The translations under genes and the position numbers were made by a program. From Macrostomum lignano (Eukaryota), in NCBI GenBank assembly GCA_002269645.1, contig NIVC01002694.1, positions 85,213 to 149,212 of the forward strand: 64,000 nt of DNA, read 5' to 3'. This document shows, piece after piece, positions 9,543 through 54,880 of this stretch. The notes under the pieces were generated by a model, which worked only from the letters and a program-made list of their open reading frames with translations, made no database searches and had not been told where the DNA came from. Positions within the stretch are counted from its first letter, which is position 1. Each line of letters starts with the position of its first letter.

Positions 9543-9914
9543 TGCTGATTATTTACATGTACTGTCTTCGTCCGAAAAGACTGAAATATTAGTCTGGATA
9601 GAACTTTTTCTATGTTATGCTACTGCTGCTAGTTAAAGGCTCTGATCGTCTATTTATAAAAAAAACTAGTTTCTGCTAAATTGGCCTTGAGACTTCAATT
9701 AAAAATGCAGTTTGGCGTTTTTACCGTTGACAAATGTCGATGAACTGTTGAAGGAAAAAAGGTCTACATTACATAAAATTCTTCAAAAGAACACCAAAAC
9801 CTATATATTCCCTTTATATATACACCAGCTATTTTCATACACGTAGACACTATTTAACAGTAGAAACGAGCTACTAAATACTATAACTATAGTTGTACGC
9901 TCGTATCCATATAT

Positions 9915-10836
9915 TGTAGTGACTGGCTGCTAACTAGCTATTCAGCAGCATTCACTAGCTTTCCCTAAGGGTGCTGTGATCCGCTGCACAGTAGCTCAGT
10001 CCACCTGATCTAGTGAGAGAGATACCCTGTGCTGGGCCTAAGTGTTTACTGCCCGATGACTCATCGCCTGAGCAGGCGCGGGCAGCCACACTCAATGTAT
10101 TCCCACTCGCGCTGAGGAGGCGTAGCAGGATAACTCATCACCTGCGCGGAGTGTAAGGGCTGCCTAGAGGGAGTAAACAGGATGACTCATCCGCCCAAGT
10201 TCTATTTTTAGCACAGAAAAGCACGTGACTGTGCACGCACACTGTGCGTGGCCACTGACCTTGAGTCACGCCACTGCTGCGTGACAGGGTTGCCTTATTT
10301 GGAAGTTGGCCTTGAATCACGCGTCGCTCGCATGATTTTAGTGACCAAATAAGGAAGTTTCACGCGCTCACCGCATAAATTCACGTGACTTTTGGGGGTT
10401 CGCTCGGCTATAAATACGGAGCATCTGCGATCCATTATTCTCCAGATCGTGGAGCAACGCGGAGCCGATCGCGTCGTCCTGCCTAGGCTCGACCGGAGCT
10501 GCCTCTCTGCCTCCAAGCTCTCCTCTCTCATTTCAGGTTTTACAGGTTTTCAGGTTCGAGCAGCATTCAACTAAGACGATCGACTGTCGAGACATTTTTC
10601 AGATTTGCCTTTGCTCCGAGCGACTTCGTTATTTTATTTCTGGTGACGGATAGACAACTCTGCCGATGCGTCGAGTCCGCACACCAAGGTGGCAGCAACC
10701 CTACCAAGTCAAGGCTAACGTTTTAGGTTCTTTTTCAGGCAAATCGATAGGTAGTACAACGGTGCTATCTAGCTACTTCAGGAGCAGCGGGTTCTAATTC
10801 TAGAACACCTTCAAGAACCCGAGGAGTAGTACTTCA
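9915..10836 (+). mobile_element. Solo LTR (~922 bp) with 4-bp target-site duplication ATAT
   Basis: Starts TGTAGT, ends ACTTCA, flanked by ATAT at 9911-9914 and 10837-10840. GC-richer than its flanks; TATAAAT at 10409; no coding capacity. Orientation is inferred from the TATA box only. Confidence 0.75.
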
Positions 10837-12058
10837 ATATCTATAAAATTTCAAGTCGAATCTATTGCTACTTCAAAATTCAAACAAAAAATACAAAAAG
10901 TAAATAAAAAAGCTGCAAAATTAGTTGCAGCAAAAACTTGTATACTTTTTTAAAATCTAAAAACGTAATTTTGTCAATTATAAATTTGCTATTGTGAAAA
11001 CAATTCTGAGACAAAGCAATAAGCAGAAAGTGAGCAATTGAAGATTATAAAATGAGTAGTCGAAGTTTTTTCGTGGATATAACAAAATCAATTTATTGTA
11101 AAGGGCATCAACTTGCGCCATTTGTGTTTCCCGTAGCAAAGCAATAGAATTCGAAGAATTTTTGAGACAGAAATTTGCAATAAAACAGCTGCATATGTAC
11201 ACAATTACTACTCGTAGAATACATTTAATATACGCACACTACGCAGTAAATATAAATTTTCTTTGAAAAAAATAAAAGCACAGCAAACTAAAAAGGCACT
11301 AATAAAATGGTGTCACTGCAGACACTGAGTTTAAAGTGTAGAAAAATTGGCACAATGGAATGAAACAAAAACAGTGTAAAATTCCTAACTATATAATATT
11401 ATCGATATTCAAACGGTAAAACGGCAAGCACAGAAGTAGGCATTTCAACAAGTACAGGGTTTTGTGTAGATCGAAAATATTAGAAGCACAATCTGATTAA
11501 GTGATGTTAAAATTCTAGCTTAAACAGGAGTTAGTATGCGCATTAGTATGCGCATTATTATTATAAAATGCGCATACTAAGGCCGCAGATTATTTCTGAT
11601 CTTATTTAAGGCAAATTAATACGAAAAAATGGGTAAATAAAAATATTCGTTCGATGTAACGTTCGATATAATCTCGTGTGCAAACCGAGTATTCAAGTTT
11701 TTTCAGTACCAATTTAAAGCCTAAGGGCCTCAGGAGTTTCTACTGTCTCAATTTCCTTGAGTCAATAGGTAAAATACTTTATCCTCTGCAGTAATTTAGG
11801 TTTTTAAAACTTTATCCGAGATTTCCTGTTGAAATTTATCACGGGGAGCACTTTAATAGCTAAGAGTACGGGTACTCTAAGGTAGGAAATTATAACTTCT
11901 CCGACACGAGCTCATTCTACTTAAGTCATTTTAATAAATCATTAAATGTTCAGCGTTAAAGAAAAGTAGCTTCAGAATCAGCTGAAAATCTATTAAGGAT
12001 TACAATATACCTTATAGGACATAGTTTCGCACAATAGAAGTATATTGATATTTTATAA

Positions 12059-13506
12059 TCACTCTTGATTTCCATTTTGTGCGGCGGCTTTATCCATCAA
12101 CTTGATATCGGGCGAAATTCGTCTAAAGTTCGAACAATAAAATTGTTTGCTTGCAGGAGTGCAGAAACATTAAATGACAATGAAAGCAATTGCGTATACC
12201 TACCTGGTGATAAGCAAGGTGGCTAAAAGCACAATAGATAAAAGCACATGAACTCCGGAATAGATGAACAGTAACGTCTGCAAGCCAATTTTCTCGTACA
12301 AATATCCACTGACTGTTGGTTCATAAAGCAGCCAAAAAAATAGGTGGAGTTTGCTACGCTTGTTATTAAAACGAATGTAGCAGCGTTCTTTTCGAATCCA
12401 TGCTTGCAGACCTCCGTTAGGCACAATCCAAAAATTGGAAATAGAGTAGAACTAACTCCAATTCCAATAAAAATTAAAGCGGCCACCAAAGAAGCCATTA
12501 ATAAACGAACAGGAATGTTTGATCTTGGTGGGTCGATGAGAAATAAGCCTAAAGCGCTGGATAGTATTCCAAAAAGCGTGATACCAGCATTCCACCCAGT
12601 ATAGTCCGATAGGAAGCCAACGAAAATTTCAATAATACTCTCACTAGAAAAGGTATCAGAAGTAAAAGACCAATTACAGAATGTGAAAGCTTGAAAGTTT
12701 CAATAGTATAAGGCTCCATCACAACGCCAATAGTGCCTTCCAGTACCCCCACATGCTAAACGTCAACATAATAACAACTACCAACGGGATGCGTATAAAA
12801 CTGAAGAACGAAACTGGCTTCTCGTGTCCATCATCGCTAACACTTGAAATTACGGCGATCGCAGCAAAGGCCATCAGTAAGAGAAGACCGCCAACTGTAA
12901 GCAATGGCAGTTTGAACCCACCAACATCAAACAGGACGCCACCAATTCCTGGTCCCAGCGTGTAACCGATCGATAATCCAGTTTCCACAACGCCATTGAC
13001 AGTTGACAAACGGTCTGGGAAGACGCTGGCAAGGGTGGCAAAGGCGGCCACGAACAATATAGAAGCACCAATAGCTGATACGGCACGGATAATGATGACC
13101 AGCACAGCGAAGGTAATGCCTTTTGGTCTGTTCTCCAGAAAGGCAAACACCACCTACGATAAGCTGCAGATAAAGAGCGAACTAACAACAAGATTTCTTT
13201 TTTGAACTCTTCGGGCAATAAAGACAACAAATGGGCTGAAATGAAATTAACAAGCTGGAAAACACCGTATAACAGTCCAGTGGCAGTCATTGACATTCCT
13301 CTTGACAGAGAAACTCAGGGAAAAAACGGCGATATTACAGAGTAAGCTGCTGTTGAAAATAAGTCTGAGCAGAAGCAAGTAATCAATATTAGAATAGAGG
13401 TAAGACCAAGTGTTGAAAGCTTCATTTTTGAAAATATTTTGCAGCATCCATTTTCTTCGTCATTGTTATTATTTATTAACCAGCGTTTCGAAGTTTCGTT
13501 TGACAT
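12059..13506 (-). pseudogene. SLC18B1-like copy 2, pseudogene
   Basis: Collinear with copy 1 from MSNETSKR (13506). It carries nonsense changes GGA>TGA (13315-13317) and TGG>TAG (~13155) plus several frameshifts that split it into five or six ORF-track fragments. The terminal intron (12203-12123) is retained. Confidence 0.85.
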
Positions 13507-14691
13507 GTCTCTTGTCGGCAAGATCGGCAAAAACTCATGAATAATAATTTAGAAATATAAACTAGTATAACACTATAATTAAGCAATCGATTTTATTTAA
13601 AAAGAATAATGAAACTATTTACTAATTTTAGGTTTTTTCGTTCTTCAATGCATTGTGTCGATTTTTGTTTCTAAAGATATCATGCTCAGCAATGCAATTG
13701 ACAATTAAAAAAGAAGTTAATTTTTTAAGAACCTTTTAAGCTAAGACTTTACAGTAAGATTTGTGGGAGAAACGAGAAAATATTCCTTATAAAAACACTA
13801 TAATTATTCATATAAACTAAAGAAAAATAGCAAAAAGTTTTCGATAGTTCTGCAATCATCGCTTATAATTTATTGAAATTCTTTAAAATGTATATTTTGT
13901 AGAATATCACAAATACGAAAAAATTAAAAGTCAAGTTGAAACAATAAAAAACTAACGCCGCATTACGAGTATTGTGGCTATGGTTATGACTGTTTGAAAA
14001 TAGCTCGAAAATAGAAGTCTTTGTACTACGATATAACAAAGACAAACTGGTAGATATTAACCATGCAATACGTACGAATGTGAGACGGCCGGTAGCGGCA
14101 CGTTTACTTAAAATAGTTACATTTAATATGTGGAGAAGAGAATAAAAACTCAATTTAATACGTAATACTGCACAATATACAGCATACGTTTTTAAAAGTA
14201 CAAAAGGATTAGTAAAGAAAATATGGAAGTAGAAAGACTACGTAACAAACTTCGGGTTATCAGTACAGGGATGAAGCAAAAATAGTATTTAAAAAAATTA
14301 GTTCATCATCTATATCTGAATGATTAACTATCATTAAAGTTAGCTTTGAAGTGCGCACGAAGAATATATGTAAATTTGCGAGGCATTTTTTAATCTATAA
14401 AGCCTTAAAATTTGATACATCAACGTAGGACTGAAAATTATTCTCAATATCTGCAAAAACTTGTAAAAAACTGTTTGGTAAAAATCATGACTTTAAACAT
14501 AGGTAAAAACTGTGCATTGTATAATTAATTTCAGATCAGATACGTCTTGCACGATTTGATTGTTCAATTTAAGACAGAATTTGCTATAACAGAAAGAATT
14601 ATTATGCCGTCATACCAGTTTCAAGTGTAGTTTTTTTTAATATAGTTTGAATGTGTTAATAATTCTAAATATTATTATATAAATCCATCAG

Positions 14692-16311
14692 TCAGGCACT
14701 TGATGCAGCAGCACCAAAGCCACCAAAGCGATTGGCGCGAGGTGACTCAATAATTTGCACAGTATATTGATAGCTATAATGCGACGCTAGGCATGAGATG
14801 CTGGATCGTCGACTGCGCGGAAATAATGAATGTTCAATAGCTGCTGGGCTGTCTACTGTACTGGCTGGGCATGGTACATCTGCTGAAGCCTTCGGAGACT
14901 CAGCCAGTTTGACATTCTTATATCTATAATGTATTGGCGACTTCAAGTAAGGATTTTGCAAACTAAGCGTTATAACGACAGGAAACTATGAGGACAAGGC
15001 TTACCTGCTATAAACACGAGCAATTCCAAGCAGTACCGCGCACACAACAAAGAGTCCAGAGTAGGCAAACAAGAGTTTATCGAAGCCTATCGTATCGTAC
15101 AATCGGCCACCAAGAGTCGGACCAATGAATACGCCAAGAGAGTAAGCCGAATTCGTAACGCCCGACACTAAATTTATTGTTGCAATATTTTCATCCATTC
15201 CATTTGCATAGGCGGCGTCAAGGCAAAGTCCGTAAACGGGAATCATCACTGCCGAGGAGCCCAAACCGACCAATACTAGAGCTGGCAACAAGGTGAAAAG
15301 TGTCGGCTTGATCGGCAGCACAAAACTGGCAGGATTGATGAAAAACACACCGATAGTGCAGCCGATCAGGCCAAAAATGAGAACTCCAATGCCCCAGCCC
15401 ATTGAGTCCGTCAGCCTTCCCCATAAAACAGCTGACAATGTGTAAACTAGACTTGGCGTTAGAAAAATCAGACCAATTATTGTGGACGAAAAGTGGAAAG
15501 CTGCAGTCAAATAGGGTTCCATAGTGGCGTCAAGCATACCATACATTGCTCCAGTAGCGGCATAAGAAATCAAAATAGCCAATGCAATCGGAATGGAAAA
15601 GAACTTTAAAAACGATGCCGACCGATTATGTCCTCCGGATTCCGCGGGTAGAGCTGGCGTAATAAGGTACGCAGCCACTGCCGTGAGAAGTACTAATCCA
15701 CCGACAGTAAAAAATGGCAGCCGAAATCCTCCAAGATCATAAAATGCCCCGCCAAGCGCCGGTCCAACCATGTAGCCAAGGCCCAGAGCCATCTCAACAA
15801 TACCTGTCACTGTGGACACTTTATCTGGGAAAGAGTGCGCCAAAATCGCAAACGACGATACAAGAAATATTCCGCCACCAAATGCACCGATTCCTCGAGT
15901 TAGGAGGCACATTATTGCAAATGTGGACCCATTAGGACAGTACTCTAGCACTCCGAACAGAACTGAGCACGTGCCGCAAATGAACAGGCCGCAAATGTAG
16001 ACAAACCTATTACCGACATGGGCAGCAATGTGCACAACAAACGGACTACTAAGAAATATCATTAGCTCAAACTCTCCAATAATTATGCCGGTTAGTGTCA
16101 ATGATATACCTTTGGCTTCCGCTGCGCCTGGAAAAAATGGACTCAAGACTGAGAAGGATAGAGCGGCAAAAAAGTTCGAGACTGACAAAGTGATTAACAG
16201 AAATATGTTGGCGCCGCGATATGTCGATGATGATTCACTGTTCTCGGCGCTTTCACTGATGTCACTGGCACCGTTTGCAATCAGGGGAGATATCTCGTCT
16301 TTGTCCGCCAT
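14692..16311 (-). CDS. SLC18B1: MFS transporter SLC18B1-like, copy 3 (exons 16311-15005 and 14923-14692), intact
   Basis: Intact 12-TM ORF from MADKDE (LEYCPNGSTFAIMCLLTRG, GYMVGPALGGAFYDLGGFRLPF). An 81-bp GT-AG phase-2 intron joins it in frame to ORF 14692-14961 (..YSR|YKNVKL..). Confidence 0.88.
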
Positions 16312-17133
16312 TGAAGAGGAACATCCTGAAACAGTCAGTTGGATTGATTGACGATAAAGTTTAGTAACTACACTGAAGAAAACAGAAAGTAATTCAAGCC
16401 TAGACGAACACAATTCTGACATCAAGTGGAATATTATGAGATATTTCTATTATTAAGGTTCTTTTTTACGAATTCGAAAGTTGTGACATTCAATAATAAT
16501 AAAAAAATAATACGAAAATCGTCGAAAAAATAATGTCGAGTATATTTTATTCAAAATGTAGAAAAATATATGAATTTATCCGAATACACTCTAGCATAGA
16601 AAGAACATTGAAAATAGTTTTTAATTTGGTCTCAAAGTCACAGACAATTATTCGCGGGTTTATTCATTGCTTTGTTGTCGTAGATTCGAATCACAAGAAA
16701 AAATGCACTTTTAAATGATATTTGTGAATTGATATATGTTCCGACACTTAAGAAATTTTCTTCTGACAAAATGCCATTTCTAATGCTGAAATTTTGAGCT
16801 ACAGTTTGCTAAAATGATTGGCAAATAGCAAATACGATTATTATTTTTATGCGCACCGAGGAATACCGTACCGTACAAGCATGTAGATAGTGAATTCAAA
16901 ATAAATAATCACATTAGCTACACGAGAAGAGATAGTTCAGTCCGACGAAGACATGAAACTTGGAAGTCTCGATTAGATAGAGGCAAAACGTAGAAGAAAA
17001 ATTGTCAAGGATTAAAAACTTCGCAAAATGTATCAAAACTATTGATTAAACACCAAGCATTTTCTTTTTGAGAGACTAAAATTTTAATAAACTATATATT
17101 AAATTACACGATAACGCACTTAAGTTACAAACT

Positions 17134-19633
17134 CTAGACCGTATTACCAATTGATCCATAATTATTATTTGCCTCGTTGCGACCATCGCGATCAATTAAG
17201 CAGTCAGCCGACTGACTAACTGGGCCAACTATCGCAGGTGAGCGGCCGTCCTCGCCCTCTTCGTTAACTAAAAATGACACGCCTCGCGTCTCGCGGCGCA
17301 TAAAGCCGCGATTCTGCCGCACTGGCCCAATTAGGCAGATCAAAGTTGCCAGGCCGAATAGGCCGCTGTAGCCGGTGAGGACCCAGGCTAGACCGAATCT
17401 GAGCATATTGTTTAATAAAACTGTGTCAGATTACGTTAATTCACCTCAATTGGCACTTTTTTTTATCAATTGGCAAAATCAGACATAACTTTATTCCCCA
17501 TAGAAAAGCTGGAATGAAAAGCACTGATTCGTAGAAAGAGCCAAAAACATAAATGCCCAAGGGTGAGTTCCCAGATTATCACAATGAGCAGGCGGGTTGT
17601 AGGACGATGTGGTCGCTAATGCAAGAGTGTGTGTACTATACGCAGGCACACATTGATGCATAGACAGACTCAAAGAGGGACTCTAATCGTCAGCCATGTA
17701 GTGTTTGGACTTTAAGAGGGGAGCTGGCCATCATGGGTGTGAAACGCACGACAAACCCCCATAGCTAATTGTCGTGCTCAAGCCCCAAATGAATGTGACC
17801 AAATGGAATCGAACCAGGGGTCGTGACGCAATAGTGGGACGCGTTTATCGTCTGCCTATTTCCTTATCGCGATGGCATGTAACCTAACTTTTTAGACTTA
17901 TATATAATAAACTTATTGAGTAACTCTTTAACCTGAAGGAATAGCTTATAAACTAAATGGCCTCACGGTGTTCTCTTACTGTTTTCCTAAATTTTGGGTC
18001 GTTGTAAAAGTAGCAGTAAGCTGAGGTTTGGTGGAAATTAAATGAATATTCATCTTAAGTGCACTATGCAATACTTAATTGGATTGATAGAACTAATCAG
18101 TGTGCGGTATATAGTAAAAACCATTTATAAAAACGAACTTTTTTGGACTATATATTTATCGGTTTTTTACATGGTAATGGTATTCCAGCCATAAGATTAG
18201 GTAATCTAGCTTAGTTCCGAACTTGAGTTTGACCAATGTCAAATGGTTTATTCCGTGCTAATGAAAAACACTCACTTGTCTAAAGCCACACCACCAAGAG
18301 TTGGGCCAACAAATGCTCCAAAGGCGAATGCAGTATTAACTAATCCAGAAACTACAGAGTAAGTTGTTAAACTTCGATCAAAGCCTCGCTTATAAGACTC
18401 CGTAGCAATCAAATTAAACACTGGCACAACAACAGCCGAGCAGGCTAAACCAACCACGACAAGAGCGGCAATAAGTGATGGCAAGTTTGTATCGTAAGGT
18501 AGAAACGGTGCCGGATAGACGAACAGCAAGCAAACAGAGAATGCTGCCAAGCCGCCAATCATAATAGGCAGACCGGCGCCGCGCGAATCGACTAGGTAGC
18601 CCCATAGAGCGGCAGATATAGAATAGATCAAAGCGGGCAGGAATAGCATCAGCCCAACAATAACTGGCGAGAAATGAAATTTGGCGGTTAAAAATGGTTG
18701 AAAGCTGACATCTACGAAGCCAAGAAAAGAGCTAGCAACGCACATTCCAAATAGAGTAGCAAGACAAAAGGGTTCTCTAACAAGCGTCCAGACAGATTTT
18801 GGTCGAGAACCATCAATGTTAGGGTCGTCGTTTACAAGCGACGGCATAACGCACAACGACAATAGTACAACCAGCAATAGGAAGCCGCCAAGACTAACAA
18901 ATGGTAATTTAAATCCGCCAAGTTGAAATAATGCGCCGCCAATAACTGGGCCAACCATAAAGCCAAGTCCGCCAGCGGTCTCCAGCAGACCGAATACTGT
19001 TGACAATCGATTTGGAAATAGTCTGGTAGCTATGGAGAATGAGGACACAACAAACATGCTAGTGCCAATAGCGGACACGCCGCGGGTTAGTAGGCACATA
19101 ACGGCGAACACAATTCCAGGAGGGCAGTACTCCAATGCGCCAAACAGTATTGAGCAGACGCTGCATATGACAAGACCCCAACTGTACACGAATCGTCCGC
19201 CAATGCTGCTGGTGAAAGCGCCAACAAGTGGACTGCACAGACAGATTACTAATTGAAATTCGCCAACTATAATACCTGTCATAGTAACCGAAAGGCCTTT
19301 CAAATTGGCTTCTCTGGGAAAGAACGGTCCGAGAACTGAGAATGCTGTTGAGGTAAAGAAGTTTACTAAAGCTAAGCTGGCTAATAGTACATTGCGTCGA
19401 GCTCGACTGAGGCCAGCCACCTCACCGCTAGTTGAAGCCAATTGGATTGCCTGTAAAATAAACAAACGGGTTGAATGATTGCAGATTTTCTGAGGGTGCT
19501 GTAATTCTATAATGCTGTACTTATTAGTATTGCTAGAGTAAAGTTCAAATCCTATGTGAAACCGATTGAAATTGAGTCGATTTCTCGAATTAGGCTCTCG
19601 AATTATCTCAGTCTGACAAAACTCCATGGTCAT
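17134..19633 (-). CDS. SLC18B1: MFS transporter SLC18B1-like, copy 4 (last exon 17398-17134; intron 18275-17399; 5' end uncertain)
   Basis: ORF 18272-19633 (LGPFFPREANLKG, LEYCPPG, GFMVGPVIGGALFQLGGFKLPF) ends at donor AA|GTGAGT and splices in frame to CAG|A TTC GGT (..LDK|FGLAWVLTGYSG.., TM12). An acceptor-like TTTACAG at 19451 makes the true N-terminus unclear. Confidence 0.85.
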
Positions 19634-20176
19634 GCATTGGAAATCTGGATGCCCAATGGTTAGATTTGCTTGTCAATTAGGCCAGTCTCATAGTCAGAAA
19701 TTCGCACGCATGGCCCAACCTATCTTTATTCTCTTCTCACTGATTTTACAGTTGGAACTATTTCTAATCAATTTTGAGGCTAAAAAAGATTGTTAAAAAC
19801 GATAGTGAAAAGTCGATGCTGTTAAAAGTTACCTTTGTGTATATTTAGCATATTAATTAATTATCATTAAACTGACTGCAACCGATCGCACACTTCTAAA
19901 CCAATTGCAATTATGCTATTGCGGCTCCTAAAGTGGAAAAACAGATAAACTGCAGTGAAATACAACATACATAGATACGCTCGTATTGTACAATGCAAAA
20001 TTAATAATTTGTTTCTTTATACATCGCTTTGCCTTGCATGAGATGAGAGCAGACAAACAATTCATAACCGATAATAACAAGCAAGGTCAATGACAACAAG
20101 CCGCGTTAATGCGCTCTACTCGTAAATATAGAGTACGTGCGCTCCACCCTTTCATGTGATTTCATATAAAGCATTG

Positions 20177-20867
20177 GCCAAGGACTGCTCAAGTAGAAGG
20201 ACGGGAAACCTCGTTTGCTTAGAAAATTTTGTGAGTCTAGTTTTCGCCGAAAAATACACTACAGACATAGGAAATTTTATATTTTTAGCACAAAACTGTT
20301 ACTGCCTTCGATAGGAGGCGGACCCAATTTTCATCTTTTGATATGCTGTGCCTTTCTTAATGCTCCATCGATATTCATAAAGCTTTTCGTTCAGAAAAGT
20401 TTTTATAATTTTTTGTTAATTTTTAATTCCATGTACAATTGCACATTTCCGGAAATCATTAAAATGGCACGGCTCATGTTATTGGTTTTATAAATCAATT
20501 TTATCATTCTTAGCGAACTTTGTAACAATTATTTTTAACAGAGATGATATTTACAAAACCAGAGTCGAGCTGTGCCATGCATTTTTATGATTCTTACGCA
20601 CAGGGAACGTACGTCGAATTAAAAAATTAACATAGAATCCTGACTTTTTGAACAAAAAGCTTTATGAATATCGATAGAGCAATAAGAAAGGCAAATCATA
20701 TCAAAAGATCAACATTGGGTCCGCCTCCTATCGAAAGCAATAACAATTTCTGTGCTGAAAAAATAAGAGCCTCCTATCTTCGTAGTGTATTTTTCGGCGA
20801 AAATCAGCCTCATAAAAATTTTCTAAGAAACGCAGCTTCCCGTCCTGCTACTTAAGTAGTCCTTGGC
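20177..20867. mobile_element. Foldback/MITE-like element with ~225-bp terminal inverted repeats
   Basis: GCCAAGGACT... (20177-20400) is the reverse complement of ...AGTCCTTGGC (20642-20867) at roughly 80-85% identity, with a ~240-bp spacer. No clean TSD was found. Confidence 0.85.
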
Positions 20868-21226
20868 AATGGCCCGCGTCTCTCTGCGAATTAGTTTCGT
20901 TACCTGTCTTACATTATTTGTTTAACTTGCTTTGCCAGCCTTTAAATAACTTTTAATCGCTTGGTATAGTTGAATACACGACTTTCTTCATTAGTTACCC
21001 TTCGCTTTAGTGCAGGCCTCTGCTAACATAAATTACTTAATAATAAAATTGGCTCAGTTTTTCAAGATACGGCATAAATGTCTCAATACGAAAAACACTG
21101 ACTTAGCATTAATTGGTATCGACAAAAAGTTGAAGATTCATACATTATTAATTTTTTAATAAATACAACTGCAACACACTTTGCGCAGTCTTTTTAAAAC
21201 CGAATAATGTGATAAAACATTGATGA

Positions 21227-24200
21227 TTAATCAGAACCCGTCGACTCAGAAGGCTTAGTAAGTGGCTTGGACGCCTCAACAACACTTTCAGCTGCAGGAG
21301 CATTATCAAACACTTCATCGTCAATGTCTGCCACCGTTTCATTGACTTTTTCGTCTACACTTTTCTCGTCACTCGGTTTCGTTGGAATTGCAGCACCGGC
21401 TTCAATATTGTCGTTTGTTGATTCTTCAGTAGCAGCGGTAGTTTTAATCGCATCTGCAACTGAATCAGCAGCTACTACTTTGCTAACCGGAGGCGTATTA
21501 TTACTAGTAGTAGCAGTATCAGCTTCAGATTCGCAGGCGGCGGCAACTTTGGCGGTTTCTTCAGCAGCTTCCGCTACAGATACAGCGCCAGTTTTGTAGT
21601 CCGCAATCGCAGCATCCGATGAAGCTGTGCAATCGCCGGCTCCGCAACCGCTGCTGCTACCGCCGTCGCTTTCAATATCGTCAGATTCGTCATCAATTTC
21701 AGCCGCAGTTGCGGGCGCCTGATCAAAAGCGGCGCCAGACAACGGCGCGCCAACTTCGCTACCCGAACCGGAACAAGAGCCGGAACCGGACGCTTCTTCA
21801 AGATCGTCATCGCCAGACAGCGAATCGTTAGCCATATGATCGGCGGTTGCCGCGCTTGAAACCGAGGCGGCAGCGGCCTCAGCACCGGCATGCGTCGAGG
21901 CCGAAGCGGCGCCGGCTGCGGCGGCGGCGGTGGAATCCGAAGAGTTCGACACAATCATGTCTTCCTCGTCCTGATCGAATACGATTTTCTGACCAGCCGG
22001 ATCGATGCAGCTAACAACGCTCAAGCATTTTAGTAGGCCTCGTAGATACTTATCAACTCGGCGATAGTGCTTATTAGGCGATAGGGCCAATTCGCAGACG
22101 CGTTGAATAGTAAATGGGGCGTTAGTGAACTGGTCCAGTGTTGACAGGACAGTCTGGCGGTAGACGCTCAGTTGAAATGTCTCCATATTAGGCCTGGGAT
22201 AATAATCGTCAATAGAAGCCATTGATGAGTCGCTTAAAAAACTTTCAATAGCGGATTCCAATTTGACGCGAATTAGCGGCTTAACCAGGTGCCAAGGCGC
22301 GTTGGTGATGCCACTGCGAGACAGGTTGACCAGATAGTGCTCCAGGTCTGGCGGCACATCGCTTGTTGCTGATTGGGCAAACTCTGTGAAAAGATTGATA
22401 AACATAACAATTGAAAAAGGCTGTTGAATTGACAATAGGTACTATGAATATCTAGAATACAATTAAGGTTGGGAATCAAACCAAGCTTCAGTCTTTTACA
22501 TAACAACTTTAGTCAAACAATTGAGCATGATAGGCAACAAATTACCATCATGAAATTTCCTATCCTGATTGGAAATGTCAAATTATTCTTAGCATATTGG
22601 ATATTAAATTCAAATGACATTACAGTATATACCCTATTAGTGGATTGTAGGCCCATATGCAATATTCAAATTGTACAGAAACCCTGCTTTTATTGCTCAA
22701 TAGGCAAAAAAACTGAATAAATTCAACTGTGGAAATTTAAATGTAAAAAAAGACAAACTAATATCCAATTCAAAACATTGATCTTATTTAACCCTTAAAA
22801 TTACATAGGTACAATAATATAATTTTAACTTAGATCTAAATATACTAGTATAGAAAAGTAACAAAAATCAAGACTTTAGCTTTTTAGACAATTGAGATAT
22901 TGAATGATTCTACCAAAAGGTTAGATTTTTTCATAAGCCCGGCCTAGTATATTCAATAAGCCCCTATCTCAGTGCAACATTGATGAGCCTTTAAATTTTA
23001 TTAGCAGTTGAACACATGTTCTTGCATTAGCTCTTTTTTGGACATTGGCCTTTATCTAGATAGAGCTTTTAAACCCTCAACAGGTGGCACTAGATGACTG
23101 TGGTTATCCAATTGCAATTTTTTTAGTCTTCTAACCAAGCCTTGATAGTGGGCAAACCTCAACAGCTAGATATCCTCAGCTAGTGTCTTTTCATTATCAT
23201 TCAATACCATTAGTACCTTTTGTAAGTAGTATTAGGTGACCATGGACACCTTGTTGCAAATTTTTCTAGTTTTATAAATCAAGCCTTGATAGTAGACAAG
23301 CTACAAATATTGGATAGTGTAAGCATTTCATTATCTCCTAACACTATTAGCATCTTTAATAGATAGTACTACTAGGTGACTATGGATATCTTGACTACAA
23401 ATTTCTCTAGTTTTGCTAATCAAAATGCAATAGTAGGCAAACCTCAACTGTTAGATATCCTTAGCTAGTCTTGATTAAAGCTTGTTTAGCAAAACTAGAA
23501 AGATGCACAATAGGGTAACCATAGTCACCTAGTGCCACTTGTTGAAAGTCTAGAAACTATATCTGGGTAAAGGCCAATGCTTAAAAAAGTTGGAGATAAT
23601 GCAAACATATGTGGTTAATATGCTAATGAATTTTGGAGGCTTGGCAATATTGCACTAAGGTGCAATGCTAATTGGCACACAGGGAAATAATGAATATATT
23701 AGTGCATATAGGAAAAATATGACCTTTGGTAGGATTGTTAAATATTTTTGATGATCTAAAAGGCTAGTGACTTGGTTCATGCTTACCTGGTAAGTGTTAA
23801 AAATATTACAACAAGTTAGCCAATTATCTTGAATTTTATATGCTTGCATTGCTCCTTTTTGGTATATCAAAAATTGGCGAGGAAAGATTTTTCCTTTTTA
23901 TTGGTAGTTTGAAAGGCAAAAATATATATAATGTGTATATAGAGTTAAAAATCTATTGCTTGAGTCTTTAACCCTAAGGACTTAAGAGTTTCTCTTATAG
24001 AAGCTTATGCAAGGACACATTAGAGACAAAGATTAATGCAGATAACAAAAAAAATTAATGGCTCATGAAACTTTTATATTCATTTATTTTTATTGTTCAA
24101 TCCTTTGTACCTATTTAATCAAATGTTCCAATAATATTTTTAAGTCTTTAAAGTTTTTAAAGTTTATTATTGAATACATACCTATCAACCTCTTTCAAAG

Positions 24201-27200
24201 GACTGCCTGCTATCCTTAATTTGCCTTTGCTTTATCTGCTCATTGAGATAGAGGCTATGAAATCTACCTCTTGACTCATTAGAGATAAATGTTAAATTAA
24301 GTGTCCTCTGGCTTTATGCCAATAAAAACTATAATCTTATATATGTACTTTGTCCACTGCAACCTTACCAATATCTACATTGACCTAGACAATGTCCACC
24401 TTCCACTCTCAATATTAGAAGGGGCTTTTTAACTACTATCCTTAGTCAAAACAGAATTCCACTGAATATCAGCATAAACTGACATAGCCAAGGCATTCAC
24501 TGTTTCATTGATAGCTCACTGTTTAATAGCCATGCTAGAGTGGGTATTGCTATCTTTCATGAGGATAAAATGCTTTTCTAGGAAAGTCTACACCTCAGTT
24601 TTCTAATCTAAAATGTGTGCCATTGAGCAGTGTATCTAGCACTTGCTCTAGGCAAATATTAATCATTTTGATATTAATTTTTACACTAATAGCCAAGTTG
24701 CTATCAAGGCCTTAACTACTAACAAAATCTCTGCTGTTACAGTATCTTAATGCCACTGTAATATGCAATCTCTTTTAGTCTTTAATAGGATTAAAACTAT
24801 TTAGATCTCTAGTCAAAGCAATATCCCAAGTAATAAGCTTATAGATTCTTTTGCCAAAGAAGGTAGCAACCTTAATGGCAACTATTATGTAATAAGGCTA
24901 TCCCTTCTCAGTTGCAAGTCACTTTCTATAACAATAGGTGGCTCTATCAGCAACATGGGAATAGTTGCATTGACCATAAGCAGACCTAATCTGCATAGCC
25001 TGAATAAGAAAGTCTTTGAATATTTAATCTCACTTAATAGAACCAACCTTAAGGAGATATGCATAGTCTTAACTAGCCATAGATTCTTCTAAAGATATCT
25101 CATTGCAAACTGGCTGCCTTCCTACTTGTCCTTTCTATAGTATATGAGAAGACTATGGAGTATCATATCATCTTTTGCCCTTATTTAATAAAGTATAGTA
25201 CAAATATCTTGGCCACTCCCAATAGATAGACAAGTTGACTATCATAGACAATATCCGTAGCCTGTGCTCTTTTGTCTAAGATACTGCCAGATAAGGGTCA
25301 CTGATACTTCTTCTATGAACTTGCTAAATACTAGTGGGGGCTAGGCAGACTCCCAAGGTTAATCCTTGGTCTCTTACTCTCTTTTTTATTTTGGGGTTGC
25401 AATAGGGGCCTCATGGCCTTTTTTGTGGCACTTGTGGCCTTTTTATTAGTAGGTAATAAAATAAGTAAATAGCCTAAATGATACAAGTGAAAACAGTGTA
25501 GTATATCTAGTCTTATAGAATATTTTGCTATGTGTACAACTTTCTTTCTTAGAAAATACAGTATTTAAATGTCCGCCAAATAGTAATAATTTTGTTTAAC
25601 TGTTGTGCACTCAAATAATATTCTACAAAATTTAAAAATTTGTTATAAATGCATTGTCTGATTGGTATAAATAGGAGCCTAGAATGGGCCAGGAAAAACA
25701 ACCGCTTGCTTGCTCAAGTAAGATCGTGACAATTAATCCACTTAATAAAAATCCTAAGCATTCTTACTTGGCTTATTCATTTCTATAGTATTAAGCCCCT
25801 TGTTGGGAGTATCAGAAACCGCTAAAAGCGAGAATCGCCTCAGGGCAAGAAGCACTACAGAATAGTAAGATTGCTTCAAGGCAGGAAAAATGTCTAAGGG
25901 CAGGGAAAACACATAAGGCTGTTGACCCTCTGATCCAGGGAACACCTAGGACTGAGAGAAAACTTATAGGAGTAAATAGAGTAAATAGTGCCATTAGACT
26001 GCTCAAGCCAAAGAGTACAGTACATGTACAGACGCTACCAATAAGATAAGTAGACTACCAATATAGAAGTAGATAGAAAAGTAGTCACACTACCAATAAG
26101 TAAGGTAATAAAGTACAAAGTAACAAAGTACATTTGTGCAAAAATATATTTTAAATTAAATTAAGTATAGGGGAATTAGTCCTGTAATAATAGGTAGTGG
26201 CATTGTGAGATTATTTATAGATAGAAAGTCAGCCTTTTTGACAACTTTGGTGTCAGCGGTAGGATAATTTCAGTGAGAACAATCATGCCTGTTACAACTT
26301 TGATGGCTAATTAGTGAGATTTTAATAGAGGGAAGCTAAACCCTTATCACATAAGATTTAAAAACTTAATAGCTAAAGCACTAAACTGACTAAGTTCAAA
26401 TTTTAAGACATTATTTTTTAGATTATTAATTAAAGCTGCAACTAGTCTAAGTTACTTTTTGATAAAAAATCTAAGCTTTGCTTTTGCATATTAGAGGGCC
26501 TATTAATTAATCATTTCTAGCTATCTATTATAATAAGAATAGGATTTAAAATAAAACATCTTGAATAAAAGCTTGGCTCCAAACATTTAACCTATGCTAT
26601 CATACTTGGGTGCAACCTTGGGATTCACTCAGCCATTTCTATTGGCAACACACACATGTATATCGCTATTGGACAGAATAGTAGTCACGTGACTGCTCTC
26701 AGCCAATAGCAACTTACATGTGTGTTGCCAATAGAAACGGCCAGGTGATTCCCAAGGTTGCGCACGTATGTATGCTATACTAGGATGTACTGGGTTTATT
26801 TTTTGTGCACAGAGTATTCATATATGTAACCTAAATTTTAAAATTGCACTTTGAGATTAAAAGTTGGATGCAGTTTGGGTGCAGTCTTCTAACCTATTTT
26901 TCCATTGAAGCCTGATTTGCACTGCCTTAAAAATAAGAAAAAAGAGAAATTGCACTCTGAGCCTTAAAATCTTGTCCCTGGCAAAAACCCTAAGGGTATA
27001 CTATATATAGCAAGTATGCAGAACAAACAATTTGGCCACAAGACACACAGAACAATAGAGGATTTTTTGCTAGAAAAGTGTGCATATTTTTGCATTAGAT
27101 TTAAATGGCCTAATACTAATATTAATTTACTATAGCTCTTCTAGAGCCATAGAAGATTTTTTAAATGAAGTTGTGTATACATGCACATTTATTTAATTTT

Positions 27201-27428
27201 TACTTTCTGCACAGAATGCATTATTTGTAGGGATGAATTTTGCCCTGGCCCTGGATGCCATGGTTATTTTATGTTTTGAATAGGTCTATAAATACTATAT
27301 ATATATCAAAATTAGTTGTCTTATCCCAATATATTATTTTTAGATAGTTTGTTACATTACAATTGTCATTGAGTCAAACAACAATACTTACCACTTAATG
27401 AGTTTACCAAGTCATTACTTTGACCCAT
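21227..27428 (-). CDS. PPP4R2: Protein phosphatase 4 regulatory subunit 2 (exon 1 27428-27392; exon 2 22383-21227)
   Basis: [40 protein letters not shown] matches the PPP4R2 core, followed by an acidic low-complexity tail. A 37-nt exon [12 protein letters not shown]+G|GTAAGT joins CAG|AG TTT (..SLSEFAQ..) through a phase-1 intron at the position equivalent to vertebrate intron 1. Confidence 0.9.
22985..23642. mobile_element. Degenerate foldback/MITE within PPP4R2 intron 1
   Basis: 22985-23130 aligns to the reverse complement of ~23500-23642 (shared CATTGGCCTTTA, GTGGCACTAG.TGACT.TGGTTA). Internal ~130-bp direct repeats. The arms differ largely by transitions and contain no CpG. Confidence 0.75.
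24180..25390 (+). mobile_element. Hypermutated 3' fragment of an RNase H-bearing non-LTR retrotransposon
   Basis: Decayed motifs in order: [13 protein letters not shown] (post-RT), CFIDSS (FTDGS), VF*SK..AI (VFQxE), FYTNSQVA (YTDSQAA), [14 protein letters not shown] (WIPGHxxIPGNExAD), LTSH (LTGH), CPFY..E.M..II.CP (C-terminal Cys/His motif). Confidence 0.88.
26601..26770. mobile_element. 170-bp palindromic MITE with 8-bp TSD (hAT- or P-type)
   Basis: Near-perfect palindrome centred on CACGTG (26686-26691) with ends CATAC...GTATG, flanked by TATGCTAT at 26593-26600 and 26771-26778. Confidence 0.9.
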
Positions 27429-28669
27429 TGTTGAAAGAACCATTGCTAAGAGGGCCTAAGCAACCTTTAGTTTAAGCTTTCTTTGGAAAAGACTTCTTAC
27501 TTTACTAGGTGTCACTATCGAAATAGTAATCTTAGTAGCACATACACTAGACAGAATCGCAAATTCGATAAACAGTACAGTGGTCGTGGAAACACGCAAA
27601 CGTTCAAACACTAAGCTTAGAATTCCTAAAAAATGAAGAAAATATAGCTAAACTAGGTGTAGAGTAAAGCTGATCCTGATAATACCTACAAGGGCTACTG
27701 AATTAATTCAAAGATTAATCATATTATTAAAGAAAGTATAAAATCATCTGCAATGGGTACTTGCTCATGTGATTTTTAAATTTTCTGAGTAGTGGTGTTA
27801 CGCCTGCTCCTTCCAAATTCGACCTTCGGAATTGAATAGTAGATCATTTCTCTGTCGTATAAGAAACAGCTAAAATACTAAATAATTACAAATGAAGGAT
27901 AATTTTAATTGCCTAAATTAAAGTACTACAGTCGTCTTTATTTAACTTAAAATTAACTTTTGTTAATACTGTTAAAATAATGTTTTGACTGACAACAAGT
28001 ATTTTAACATTTGATTAAGGAAAAATTAATTGAATATTTTTTGCAAGCATTTCAACTCGACGAAAGTCGACGGTATTTGTGTATTTTGTGGGTGAGTAGT
28101 TCATTGAATTTGTTTTTGGAATTTAGTTAAGAGTTTCTCTGTAATCTAAATTAAAAATCTTGCTTCTGTAAAAGTTTAGTAGAATAGCAGAATGAGTAAA
28201 GTAACACAACTATCGTATGTATAGTCCATGGTTTTAGGATTAGGATGATAAAAAGTCCTGCATGGAAAAATAAAACAAATTAAATCGTTTGCTTTCTTGC
28301 CAAAACATGTTTGGAAATCTATCAAACTTGTTTAGATCCGCTCCTACAGTTTGAACTCAGATTAATTTTTGCAAACTAATGTTCTTTTGCTTCATCTTAT
28401 ATGCTTTCGAAACAAAAATTGACGAATACAACCGCATTTTATAAAATTTATTCTATTCCAGTATTTATTTTCTTTTTCCATTAATTAAAACTTTAAAATA
28501 TCTAAAATTTTGACTCTTATGGATTGTAAAGAATAAAAAATAAACGCAGTATGAATACATTTAAGGAGAATTGCTCCATAACCAATAGATAAATTTTCGT
28601 TGTATCAACCTTTTAATATTATGCAGGTTCTTCTTTTTGGTCGAATACAATTACCAACTTATCAACGGA

Positions 28670-30749
28670 ATGGATCGCAATATGCCAGTACAGTCGGGTG
28701 GGTTGTGGAACTCAACTCCAGTGCAGTACAGTGCTCAAACCCAGCAGCTGCTTAAAGGTAAAAACCGCACTCAAGTACAGCTTGAAGTTCACTTTAACAT
28801 ACTATATTTAATTTATAATGCAAGCAAAAATTATAAAAAAATCTTGTACTTACATTTCAGACATGATGCAAGAATCAAAGCTTACTAATTTGCAAATGAG
28901 AAAAGTGTCAGAGACAATGAAAAGTAAGGATTAAGCTTTTGCAAAAAATGGCCTAAGACTTTGCCAACACATACCATTTCATTACAGCTACAATTTTTTA
29001 TATCTGCATTTTTTTCTAAATTCAGAAGGCTCCAGTCTGCCGACAGATCTGCCTCCGACGTCATCTGCCAGGCAAAGGTCAAACTCTGCCGGTAAACCGA
29101 GAGGTCCAATGCCGAAAGTTCTCAATCCAAAGTGAGACGTAGTTTTGTTTCCTTTACCAACCGTCTTTACAACATACTTGACCTCTAGTGCCATATCAGG
29201 ATGAGGTCAGAAAGTTCAGGGTTCAAAGTTCATTTACGAGCTAACTTTCATAAGCGCTTCTGGGCCATGGTTACTCGTTTATCATATTGTTGATCAACTA
29301 GCTTCTTACTCTTGGTTAATTTAGGAAGTTGTTAAGGTTAGAATTCTGAAAGTATTTTAGAGCTACACAATTATTTTTTTAATTATTTTTATGAGATTTC
29401 TAAAACAGGATTGTTTGAGTTTTAGAGCACAATCAAATGAATACTATCATTAGAAAGAAAACATACGAACCGTATTTTGGCAAAGCATCTTTTAACGCCG
29501 ATTTAACAAAACGTTATTCCGTAAGTTTCGAATCATGCTTTAACAAAAAGCACCTTTTGTAGATCTAAGAGACAAGGGGCGCACGTACTTTAAGTCACGT
29601 GATCCCCCCCGATCCAAATGACAAATTCCTGCGTATGCCTCTGTGGCTCAGCTTTGTCAAGCAGTCAGAATAGAGGCCACAGTAGCTCAGTTTTACAAAA
29701 GAAGCTGAAATTTCCCTCACCCACCAGAAACTATCAATCGAGTCTGCGTACGCGCGAACAAATCGTTGCTACGGGAGCCTACGAAAAGCCGGCCTACCGG
29801 CCAACGGGCCCGTCCGGTCGAAATCAGGACGCTGAGAAGCGACGACTGGCGAACCGCATGGCCTTCGGTGACGAGTGCCCGCCAGACGATGGACGCGGGG
29901 ACGTCGGCGGCAGCGGCGGCAGACGCAAAGGCGGAGTGAGGCGGATGACTCTGGAAGCCCCCGCTCCGGAGCCGACGCTGGACCGGTTCGACGAACTGGC
30001 CGAGGAAGTTGAGGACAGGCGTCGCTTCCTCGACCAGATGGAGGCGGCCGGGCAAGGCGCCAAGTATCGGGCCAAGATTCAGGCGGAAATATCGCAAGTG
30101 CGTGTCCACGGGGTTACGAGTAGATTATCTACCGCGGTCATTCCCGATGGGCTGGAAAAATTATATGCATCCTATACTTAAGACAGCTTCGGGCCCCCAG
30201 GAACCGGCGGCTCTATGCATGATATGGGGCCACTGGTGCTGGCGCCCCTTTGGTGCTGGCGCCCCTGATGCTAAAGATTCTGGTGCTAAAGCCCCTAGTG
30301 CTAAAGCCCCTTGTGCTGACGCACCTGCTGTATAATAAGCTTAATGTTAATATAATAAGCTTAATGCTTAACGTATAATAAGCAATTACCGATCGGTTTT
30401 TTAAAAGCCGCCCTACAACGGAAGCAAATTGAAGATATTTTTTGTCTTAATTATAAAAACTTATGTCTGCTATACATGTAAATTTTAAATCGGCTCAATT
30501 TTATAACAGTATATTTCAATTACTAAAAACTTTCTAGATATGCTTTACCATATAGCCGGTCATATTTTTTTCCGTTGAATATTTTTTGCGAACAATACTA
30601 CTGTAGACACTACTAAATAGTAGCAAAACAGGTAAATTTAAGCCATGTCGCAATTTTCATTCCAGCTCGTCAGAGAGATGGAGATTATTGACAAGAAGCG
30701 CAACGAAGAGCTGGAACGAATGATGAGGGCGGAGCGGAGCGGTCAGTAG
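28670..30749 (+). CDS. C22orf23: UPF0193/EVG1 family protein; exons 28670-28757, 28861-28923, 29026-29131, 29728-30097, 30666-30749
   Basis: Spliced translation: MDRNMPVQSGGLWNSTPVQYSAQTQQLLK|DMMQESKLTNLQMRKV..|GSSLP..PTSS..|..GAYEKPAYRP..EKRRLANRMAFG..DRFDELAEEVEDRRRFLDQMEAAGQGAKYRAKIQAEISQ|LVREMEIIDKKRNEEL. All introns are GT-AG with consistent phases, and the motifs follow EVG1 as I recall it. Confidence 0.88.
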
Positions 30750-35805: not shown

Positions 35806-36574
35806 CGAATAGATTGGGCAGCCTATTTTCGAGCTCGCTACCACTCTACCTGAGAATTGTTGAAGATTACCTGACGAATTACCCAATATCGTTGTCCATC
35901 GAGTTTCACACGGTCAAATGTCTGTCGATATAGCATAATAATTAATTCACCATTCTGCTACTCGTATATTGACACCGGAAGACTGCTGGTTTCTGACACG
36001 CTGGCTGCAAAAGCAAATGGTTTCTTGTGTACTTCATTATTATCGTCCCGGACTATATGTAATGAGCGTAGTAAGTGCTATAAGCTCCATATGCATACAT
36101 GTAGAGCGCCAAGCAGCCAGTGTGCAACTGCCGCCTAGCATTTCAGAACTGCCATGGCCGACCTTTTGGACTGCCGAGCGCCAACTCTGTAGGGGCTGGC
36201 TGGCGGTTCTGTTCTGCAGGGCGGGAGAATTATTAAATCGTAACATTCGGTTACTTAGGATATGCTGGATCGCTGTCGAACTCTCAGTGGATTTGTCCTC
36301 CTCAATGAGCTAAGAAATCCTTGTTTGTGTTATTCCTATTCAACGCGGAAATTTTTAACAAAACTTATTGACACGTTTGACACAATTAACTCAGCAAAAA
36401 ATGGCGCATTTGTACGCAATTTTTACGCACTGTGCACGTTGATTCATATTTCTACGAGTAGTTTGTTTTATTATGCTTAACAGTATCGAAATTCCACTCT
36501 TTGGAATGCGCATCGCTGTGTCCATATTCTCTATTGCTCTCTAGTTATCTGCCATTCTCTATCTGCGTGTCTAT

Positions 36575-37070
<496 letters not shown>

Positions 37071-38411: not shown

Positions 38412-40049
38412 AGTGAATGCCAAAATTTAGTCATGTGCATGTACACGTCAAATTCTTGGCTTTGTCCCCCCCCACCATAAAATCGAAAGGGATGTCCCTG
38501 ACGAATCGATAGGGATCGATAGGGATTGCTACGAGTAATTTTCGTCAGCTAGCGCCAAATTTATGCGCGCGGAATCGAGCATAGCACAAGATTGCATCAA
38601 AACCGCGAAAGCAAAATCAAATCGACTTCAGCTTCTGCAAATTTGATTCCCAAATAATGAGAGCCCATGAGTAGATCTCTTCCCCGTGCACTGGCTTTTG
38701 GTGCCTGGAAAGAAACGAGACAAGTGCATTGCCTGGATGTAACAGACTTTCTCGTTAGCCGCACCTGGAGGCGATTAATAATTGTTAGGGATTGGCCGAA
38801 GTCAAAATTTTAGGACAGAAAGGGGGCAAGAAAGCGTTGCGGAGGGTTAGGAAAGTCGGCAAGAAAAAGTGGAAAGTCCCAGCAGTATGCGGTTGTCCAC
38901 TCTGGAAGCGTGTATCATCCGGGACGTACGAGCATCTAATTCCACTACTGTGTCTGGGTCGCCTCCCCAAACCGCCCACCCCATCCCCACACTCATTTCA
39001 CTTTTTTGGCCAGAAATTAGGGGATGAAGAGAATTGAGGGCGGCGGCGGCGCCTAGTTTTCAAAAGCGGCCCAGGAAACAGAAGAGCAAAAAGAGGGAGA
39101 GGGGAGAGAGAGACAGAAAAAGGAAGCCCGAAAGAAAACTAGCTTAGGTAGAAAAATGACCAGAAGACAGAAGGGCATCAGCTGCGTTTTGGCATCGGGC
39201 AAGCGACGTCTCGTTGCCAAGGGGCTTGTGATCCACTTCTCCGTAGCCGCTGCCTCCCCGCCCCGTTCTGACAACGTCAAAAGATGCCGCCTCGGCTGGT
39301 CAAAGAGGTCCAGCCTGCATTGGGGTATACGCTGTCCTTTAAAACAGGCGGCGGGCGAAGGTTGAACGAGTCTGTGTGTGTGTGTGTATTGCGAATACGT
39401 CTGGAGGAGAGGAGAGGTTGCCTCTTCTCCATCCAGGGGCTATATCCGATTCTTTTCCTCTCTGTTTCCCGGGACAGAAACTCCGGGCGGAGGGAGTTTG
39501 GTGGGTTCTTCAAGCCTTGTCTTCTTTGCTACCCTACACATTACCGTTTAGGCTCACAACCTAACTATTACATTGCTACAATGCTGCACATACACGCGGT
39601 CTCTGTGTGAGCCTCCCCCGTCTCTGACCTTTATTAGTTCATCAGTCGGTCGGGTCGCTCTGTGTGTGCGCGCTCGTGTGTGACGATTTTCTCCTCTAAA
39701 TTTTGGACGAATTAGTTTTCTAGATGGGAGCGACAGAGAGAGAAATCGGTATTATTTTTGTATTACCTTTAAACCCGATGGATACAGCGATTGCTAGACG
39801 GGGTTGAGGGTGCACAGTACAAGGGGGGAGGCTAAAACCGCGTCTGTCACTTTGTGTCCTGTCAATGTAGTAATAATGAGTTTCTAGGGTCCCTCGGCAG
39901 TGATCGGTTAGTCAGTGCCCTGGATGCAATTTCTCTGCTGGAATAAGCTGAACGGTGAGCCTAAATTGTTTTTCTTACCAGAGTTTTAAGTATCAAATTT
40001 GAAGTACGGTCTGTAAAAATGATCAACGCTGGTGGTCATTAGAGTTTGG

Positions 40050-54465: not shown

Positions 54466-54880
<415 letters not shown>

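Follow-up and report, generated by a model that had tools for sequence, protein, structure and literature searches.

The first intron of PPP4R2 and its CpG void

The DNA considered here, hereafter the window, is a stretch of 64,000 nucleotides from Macrostomum lignano (contig NIVC01002694.1 of GCA_002269645.1, assembly Mlig_3_7, positions 85,213 to 149,212 of the forward strand). It contains a gene for a PPP4R2-like protein, the 5-kb first intron of which is filled with old transposons and has lost nearly all of its CpG dinucleotides. A first-pass annotation, made from the letters of the window alone, had read this intron as a domain hypermutated in the manner of fungal repeat-induced point mutation (RIP).

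The PPP4R2-like protein of the minus-strand exon 2 matches exactly one gene, on NIVC01002694.1. The public annotated protein (P0001) is partial and begins in exon 2; the predicted exon 1 opens with a minus-strand ATG at 27443, which is followed by 52 coding bases and a GT at 27391, and a polypyrimidine-AG ends at 22384, so placed that the join of exon 1 to exon 2 is a phase-1 junction restoring the frame. With this exon added, the Pfam PPP4R2 match starts at profile position 3 instead of 10 and gains about 4 bits, and the predicted exon is identical in one of the paralogous loci described below (L003). Because the splice join restores the frame and the Pfam match is extended, the interval 22384-27391 is very probably intron 1 of PPP4R2, in agreement with the first-pass annotation. 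The parts of the gene and of the CpG void are as follows (positions are those of the window):

21227-22383, minus strand: PPP4R2 exon 2 (Pfam PF09184), with a CpG observed/expected ratio (o/e) of 1.0-1.45, directly adjoining the CpG void
22384-27391, minus strand: very probable PPP4R2 intron 1, of phase 1, running from the GT at 27391 to the AG that ends at 22384
27392-27443, minus strand: predicted PPP4R2 coding exon 1, 17 residues and the first base of the next codon
22361-27518, no strand: CpG-void domain, 16 CpG in 5.1 kb, bounded by the CpGs at 22360 and 27519
25680-26000, no strand: unclassified segment with 5 CpG kept (o/e 0.38), common to the paralogs

Regarding the void itself, the 5008 bp of the intron (GC 0.329) hold 16 CpG, just the number estimated at first pass, against about 136 expected at an o/e of 1; the resulting o/e of 0.118 corresponds to a Poisson P of ~7e-39, or of ~4e-31 when the expectation is set at an o/e of 0.85. 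The edges are sharp, the CpG at 22360 being the last before the void and that at 27519 the next beyond it, from where the density is normal; the void thus reaches about 75 bp beyond the PPP4R2 start codon, on its upstream side. Inside, CpG-free gaps extend over 22360-22940, 22940-23878, 23878-25256 and 26765-27519, with single CpGs at 22940, 23878 and 25256 and five each in 25680-26000 and 26601-26770, so that a recount places 10 of the 16 in these two inserts and not the 11 given before. All the remaining long CpG-free gaps in the window are simple satellites, and eight non-coding control stretches (GC 0.32-0.41) have a CpG o/e of 0.85-1.17. In the intergenic stretch 16441-17100 the 23 CpG in 660 bp (o/e 1.67) were found as first counted. 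This AT-rich non-coding stretch and another one at 57001-59000 (CpG o/e 1.42) also have a GpC o/e of about 1.5, and the CpG excess of both, outside the island, is unusual in itself.

The conspicuous TpA-containing words pointed out at first pass were recovered as well, the intron having a TpA o/e of 1.00 versus 0.80-0.89 in controls, with CTA/TAG enriched 1.7-fold, CTAG enriched 2.8-fold and CAG/CTG depleted to 0.65 of the control level. Compared with the flanks, CC/GG (1.20) and AG/CT (1.22) are up and GA/TC and AA/TT are down; these other dinucleotide shifts are the residue left after a selective removal of C before G and, less so, before A. CpA/TpG is not depleted, its rho value being 1.11 in the intron and 1.00-1.12 in controls.

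The void occupies the same interval as the first, transcribed intron of a gene of the housekeeping type, and this could be accounted for by canonical gene-body methylation or by a transcription-coupled deamination in a broadly expressed gene. Gene-body methylation is largely ruled out by exon 2 of the same transcript, which is rich in CpG right up to the splice site. As for a transcription-coupled process, which the first-pass annotation had considered besides genome defence, the expected strand asymmetry is missing: the GC skew of the intron is -0.004 (AT skew 0.012), the C>T and G>A changes of the retroelement remnant described below number 60 and 67, and the slight bias at its robust non-CpG sites is opposite to the non-transcribed-strand expectation. 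Since the strands are symmetric, transcription-coupled deamination and single-strand cDNA editing are both excluded as the main cause, and an origin in gene-body methylation or in transcription is altogether very improbable. That the void falls in the first intron of a housekeeping gene is probably incidental, as it is the accumulation of transposons that made this intron long.

Transposon island, paralogous loci and mutation spectra

The intron is made up of old transposons inserted one within another, an island comprising the elements listed here, in which LINE stands for long interspersed nuclear element and MITE for miniature inverted-repeat transposable element:

24248-25445, plus strand: decayed 3' fragment of a jockey-like LINE, RNase H and C-terminal zinc-finger region, antisense to PPP4R2
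22610-23728, no strand: block of 1119 bp with 1 CpG, in the window copy only, containing a foldback structure
22968-23659, no strand: foldback-like element, its inverted arms complementary to about 75-80%, with direct repeats inside it
26612-26761, no strand: MITE-like hairpin with 43-nt arms, 88% complementary, in all three paralogs, 5 CpG kept

The LINE fragment was located by a frameshift-aware protein-to-DNA alignment covering 392 aligned codons at 60% identity; it carries 14 stop codons, about nine frameshifts and a single CpG, at a GC content of 0.36. With an open stretch of 95 codons as query, a full HMMER search retrieved proteins bearing an intact version of the sequence; the stop-masked pseudo-protein of the intron has no Pfam match. 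The LINE consensus query is matched at 91-99% identity, over the stretches covered, by many M. lignano proteins whose annotation reads reverse transcriptase, RNase H or jockey, and the family is native to M. lignano.

No target-site duplication and no terminal repeats are present at the ends of the 1119-bp block. A Helitron was considered and rejected for it, as an A|T junction devoid of target-site duplication fits but the ends are not of the TC...CTRR type. Across this stretch L002 and L003, the two paralogous loci introduced below, resemble sisters, and the block may be an old piece deleted in their ancestor. The foldback element within it has arm mismatches that are mostly transitions (transition to transversion counts, Ts:Tv, of 31:12 and 39:15). 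Regarding the CpGs that are kept, a hosted snoRNA, tRNA or short interspersed element behind them is ruled out: Rfam gave sub-threshold miRNA-like matches only for the MITE-like hairpin and no credible family in the intron, and ARAGORN found no tRNA in the intron. Copies of the intron repeats elsewhere in the window were looked for and none was seen, internal repeats being confined to 22968-23659; likewise, Pfam on ten open reading frames (ORFs) in the window revealed no transposon domain outside the intron, where the first-pass annotation had spoken of transposons that keep their CpGs.

The cluster to which the PPP4R2-like protein belongs includes two other M. lignano proteins, whose genes lie in paralogous loci, L002 and L003, on separate contigs of GCA_002269645.1, the window copy being L001. 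Both loci are collinear with the window copy, at 96-99% identity, the order being UPF0193, PPP4R2 and tandem major facilitator superfamily (MFS) genes, and both have the CpG-void intron, beside an exon 2 whose CpG o/e is 1.21-1.34 in all three paralogs. Since L002 and L003 carry the same void, the island is older than the split of the three paralogs. A chimeric or contaminant segment, e.g. of fungal origin, which the first-pass annotation had named as what would undo its reading, is ruled out with the island on three contigs. Beside this overall similarity, the intergenic stretch 3' of PPP4R2 at 19447-21228 (L001 11156-12937) shows a divergence of about 6% between the three paralogs, versus about 1% elsewhere, and a segment of about 700 bp in it (L001 11511-12210) matches itself in reverse orientation.

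Three insertions inside the void are specific to one paralog:

L002, 7857-9202: Tc1/mariner-like insertion of 1346 bp, with a TA duplication and 29-bp terminal inverted repeats
L002, 6296-6587: MITE insertion of 292 bp, with an 8-bp duplication
L003, 6392-6690: MITE insertion of 299 bp, with an 8-bp duplication

One of the two MITEs of about 300 bp has a GC content of 0.70, and the terminal motif of the L003 MITE also occurs in the MITE-like hairpin at 26612-26761 of the window. The decay appears to be slow and time-dependent, because these lineage-specific insertions keep their CpG inside the void (o/e 0.67, 1.14 and 1.28).

The mutation spectrum of the LINE was reconstructed by taking, at each differing aligned codon, the nearest codon(s) for the consensus residue as ancestor, with a relative from an ENA metagenome (L004, protein P0008) serving as outgroup and composition guide only. 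The 185 inferred changes comprise 67 G>A, 60 C>T, 13 T>C/A>G and 45 transversions. C>T and G>A thus account for 127 of the 185, evenly between strands (60 vs 67 on the plus strand), and per nonsynonymous opportunity the rate of C>T is 0.33, every other class lying at 0.011-0.033. Of the 14 stop codons, 13 arise by C>T or G>A. Where consensus and intron copy differ (108 sites), the outgroup shares the residue of the consensus in 64 cases and that of the intron copy in 4, which places the changes on the lineage leading to the intron copy; as the coding DNA of this intact relative has a GC content of 0.54 and a CpG o/e of 0.69, the progenitor of the LINE was not CpG-poor. On this footing, the CpG loss and the C>T decay arose in situ, on the intron copy.

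The arginine codons serve as an internal control. Only 12 of the 35 consensus Arg positions are still Arg, namely 11 AGR and one CGT, and the nine unambiguous replacements derived from CGN have all lost the CpG (Cys three times, His three times, Gln twice, Tyr once). Counting the six ambiguous stop-codon cases, about 15 of 16 CGN codons are gone, now distributed as five TGN, five CAN and five TAN; AGR has become AAR in 4 of 15 cases. At robust non-CpG sites, i.e. those where the amino acid leaves no choice of neighbouring base, mutation has affected 40 of 149 cytosines or guanines (27%), with CpA at 20/62, CpC at 11/47 and CpT at 9/40. The difference between CpG (15/16) and non-CpG (40/149) is marked (P = 2e-7), and the preference for CpA (32%) over CpC and CpT (22-23%) is weak (P = 0.26). 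No 5'-neighbour preference is seen for cytosines at codon position 2 (GpC 38%, CpC 38%, TpC 26%, ApC 23%). The first-pass observation that C>T and G>A changes also affect sites other than CpG is thus borne out, and a restriction to CpG, which it had listed as refuting, is not what the LINE displays. By the classes other than C>T, the divergence of the LINE is about 3-4 times that between paralogs in the flanks.

One could also suppose that the low CpG is intrinsic to the inserts, either through CpG-poor families or through foreign, contaminant or chimeric DNA. Several dinucleotides besides CpG do differ from the flanks (CC/GG and AG/CT as given above, TA 1.00) and the 1119-bp block missing from the paralogs is practically CpG-free. 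The dinucleotide shifts are nonetheless those that a selective loss of C before G or A yields, and the block, with no duplication or terminal repeats at its ends, may instead reflect a deletion in the paralogs. Besides, the island sits on three independent contigs, the LINE is of a native family, its replaced Arg codons imply many ancestral CGN, its intact relative contains CpG and the outgroup puts the changes on the intron copy. An intrinsic origin therefore has very little probability left.

A second view of the process comes from three-way paralog alignments, in which columns near gaps were skipped, the polarity of the L002 branch is uncertain, with the root probably there, and the context counts of recent substitutions are small. 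In the void the paralogs differ by a Ts:Tv of 30:11, versus 92:92 in the intergenic flanks (P = 0.009), or 95:84 over all flank bins including genic ones when one unusually diverged bin is left aside. With the LINE (140:45) added, four independent data sets from inside the island give a Ts:Tv of 2.6-3.1, versus about 1.0-1.1 outside. The C/T differences of the void fall at CpA in 11/479 sites, at CpT in 4/546, at CpC in 2/262 and at CpG in 2/32, with CpA above CpT and CpC combined (6/808, P = 0.02). In the flanks, the rate of C>T per C/G site is roughly double that of T>C per A/T site, and no CpG hypermutability is seen (10/405 at CpG vs 40/1897 at other cytosines, P = 0.71). Taken together, these comparisons show a region-limited, long-acting, strand-symmetric C>T regime in which CpG is by a wide margin the most affected context, followed by CpA, which equals or slightly exceeds CpT and CpC. 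In this sense, the first-pass proposal of a cytosine-to-thymine, deamination-type process on a repeat-filled intron holds, given the LINE spectrum and flanks devoid of a CpG effect.

What does not hold is its RIP-like label. A RIP-like defence would rely on a RID-like DNA methyltransferase (DNMT) or on a deaminase detecting duplicated DNA and quickly turning C to T. The prevalence of C>T and G>A on both strands, the origin of the stop codons, the mutated non-CpG cytosines, the weak preference for CpA in the LINE and among paralogs, and the depletion of CAG/CTG with enrichment of CTA/TAG are all in line with it. The RIP criteria are a TpA/ApT of at least about 0.89 with a (CpA+TpG)/(ApC+GpT) of at most about 1.03, and a composite RIP index (CRI) above 0. 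The intron has a TpA/ApT of 1.07 (controls 0.88-1.04), a (CpA+TpG)/(ApC+GpT) of 1.33 (controls 1.08-1.29), which is the direction opposite to RIP, and a CRI of -0.25, within the controls (-0.07 to -0.39); indices indistinguishable from those of other sequence were what the first-pass annotation itself had set as speaking against RIP. Moreover, the CpA signature it had invoked is present in a weak form only, the preferred target being by far CpG, lost from at least 9 of the 10 unambiguous CGN codons. Transversions, at 24% of the LINE changes, imply slow ageing and not a burst, and the three young insertions in the paralogous islands are unmutated. No RID-like enzyme is known in animals, no search for one having been made here. 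A RIP-like defence is accordingly held to be quite unlikely.

A regional bias involving no methylation would be another way to obtain such a regime, the island being heterochromatic or late-replicating and undergoing more deamination or a poorer repair of uracil and T:G mismatches. The rise of C>T in all contexts and the contrast in Ts:Tv between inside and outside, consistent over the four data sets, speak for it. It does not account for the near-total destruction of CpG compared with the 27% of other cytosines, such CpG specificity being the hallmark of 5-methylcytosine (5mC), and the flanks, showing no CpG effect, also speak against it, so that it is considered unlikely.

Neighbouring genes and satellites of the window

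Apart from the island, PPP4R2 and a gene of the UPF0193 family stand head to head, about 2.2 kb apart (27443-29618), and may have a bidirectional promoter region in common. The MFS transporter genes, apparently intronless, lie in tandem on the minus strand in the region 8259-19633 (8259-9542, 15001-16425 and 18272-19633), together with a frameshifted MFS copy at about 12719-13296, and the array is conserved in the paralogous loci.

Further along, a 4.5-kb array at 40049-44527 is made of about 278 copies of the 16-bp satellite GGTTGGTGAAGTGTCT, with an extreme asymmetry between the strands (GC skew about +0.72, AT skew about -0.44) and long spurious ORFs on the opposite strand. A near-pure purine tract of 2.3 kb at 50060-52376, GA-rich and periodic at 7, 21 and 28 bp, has no C or T over about 1 kb and could form triplex or H-DNA. 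Two microsatellites of about 0.5 kb each, (TGTC)n at 36568-37070 and (AGAC)n at 54461-54881, are in inverted orientation and bracket an 18-kb satellite-rich block, in which minisatellites of 21, 43, 24 and 7 bp are also found. Lastly, an ORF of 388 aa at 52609-53775 consists in its second half of a heptamer array, (CCCGATC)n, translated as a PDPRSPI repeat, and has no Pfam match.

Proposed targeted methylation and comparison with known systems

The reading favoured here, at a probability of roughly 0.55, is that germline cytosine methylation has been targeted to the transposon island and followed by deamination; 5mC deamination is preferred because a CpG specificity this strong is its signature. 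Under this reading, a DNMT1/DNMT3 system would methylate the transposon island in the germline (neoblast lineage), densely at CpG and more weakly at non-CpG sites, the targeting to transposons possibly relying on PIWI-interacting RNA (piRNA) or on heterochromatin; spontaneous deamination of 5mC would then yield C>T on both strands equally over a long period. Regarding the enzymes, the context order CpG, CpA, CpT, CpC is that of DNMT3-type methyltransferases. Both DNMT1 and DNMT3 are retained in M. lignano, where 5mC occurs at a low global level; the literature mentions only genes of the DNMT1, DNMT3 and DNMT2 types, and the genomic methylation pattern of free-living flatworms is, according to reviews, undescribed (PMC11292947, PMC9246332, PMC10658182).

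Several points weigh against targeted methylation. The edge of the void lies within 24 bp of exon 2, an abrupt stop for which targeted methylation does not account. The surplus of CpA/TpG expected from CpG decay is not clearly above controls (1.11 vs 1.00-1.12), though this can be explained by an onward change of TpG to TpA, 5 of the 15 destroyed CGN codons being now TAN. The non-CpG C>T load of the LINE is about 4-fold above the clock, unlike the CpG-restricted 5mC decay of well-studied animals, and an extra assumption such as non-CpG methylation is therefore needed. Non-CpG methylation would explain this excess; a deaminase or a heterochromatic repair deficit may also be its source. On the side of the data, the ancestral nucleotides of the LINE derive from a protein consensus, with synonymous changes invisible and cross-codon contexts unusable, and the sample comprises a single locus, in three copies related to one another.

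A bolder proposal, rather doubtful on the present comparisons, is that a defence regime singles out separate islands of transposons, the genome being otherwise unmethylated, and leads there to cytosine loss in all contexts. In such a regime CpG could stand far above CpA and CpA above CpY (Y being C or T), through substantial non-CpG methylation or enzymatic deamination; it would be an animal counterpart of the transposon hypermutation of plants and fungi, and not ordinary CpG-limited decay. Coming back to the locus as such, its sequence predicts that the scarce 5mC of M. lignano may concentrate on small transposon islands with borders sharp to the base pair, exons being spared, and may extend there to non-CpG cytosines. 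Should this prediction prove true genome-wide, it would amount to a third animal methylation pattern beside the global one of vertebrates and the gene-body one of most invertebrates. As M. lignano is a transgenic and regenerating model, the idea is testable by knock-down of DNMT or PIWI. If what is seen here is only the ordinary decay of one old island, it is a useful annotation and nothing more.

Among known systems, AID/APOBEC editing of cDNA likewise yields retroelement copies in which C>T/G>A changes and stop codons are over-represented; unlike it, the changes here are strand-symmetric (60 vs 67), lack a 5' preference for TpC or CpC and belong to a void that covers non-LINE sequence too. 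With RIP in Neurospora (RID/DIM-2), the island has in common the conversion of C:G to T:A on both strands of transposon DNA, numerous premature TAG and TAA codons, a lowered GC content and more TpA. The hierarchy of contexts differs from the CpA-dominated one of fungi, with CpG far above CpA and CpA close to or just above CpT and CpC; besides, CpA/TpG is not depleted, the indices are not diagnostic and young repeats are untouched. The transposons of plants methylated at CG, CHG and CHH resemble the island in that C>T is up in all contexts, most strongly at CG, and is restricted to silenced islands of transposons beside unmethylated genes; the machinery in question (CMT, DRM and RNA-directed DNA methylation) is a plant one, with no sign of it here. 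Unlike the decay of CpG by 5mC in animals, as known from the repeats of vertebrates and from the methylated parts of mosaic invertebrate genomes, the remaining sampled DNA of M. lignano shows neither CpG depletion nor hypermutability, the island is only 5 kb long with edges sharp to tens of bases, its non-CpG cytosines have an approximately 4-fold excess of C>T and, in contrast with gene-body methylation, the adjoining exon is spared. It is nevertheless with this animal system that the island shares a near-complete and strand-symmetric loss of CpG, confined to one compartment and slowly accomplished, in a host that has both DNMT1 and DNMT3.

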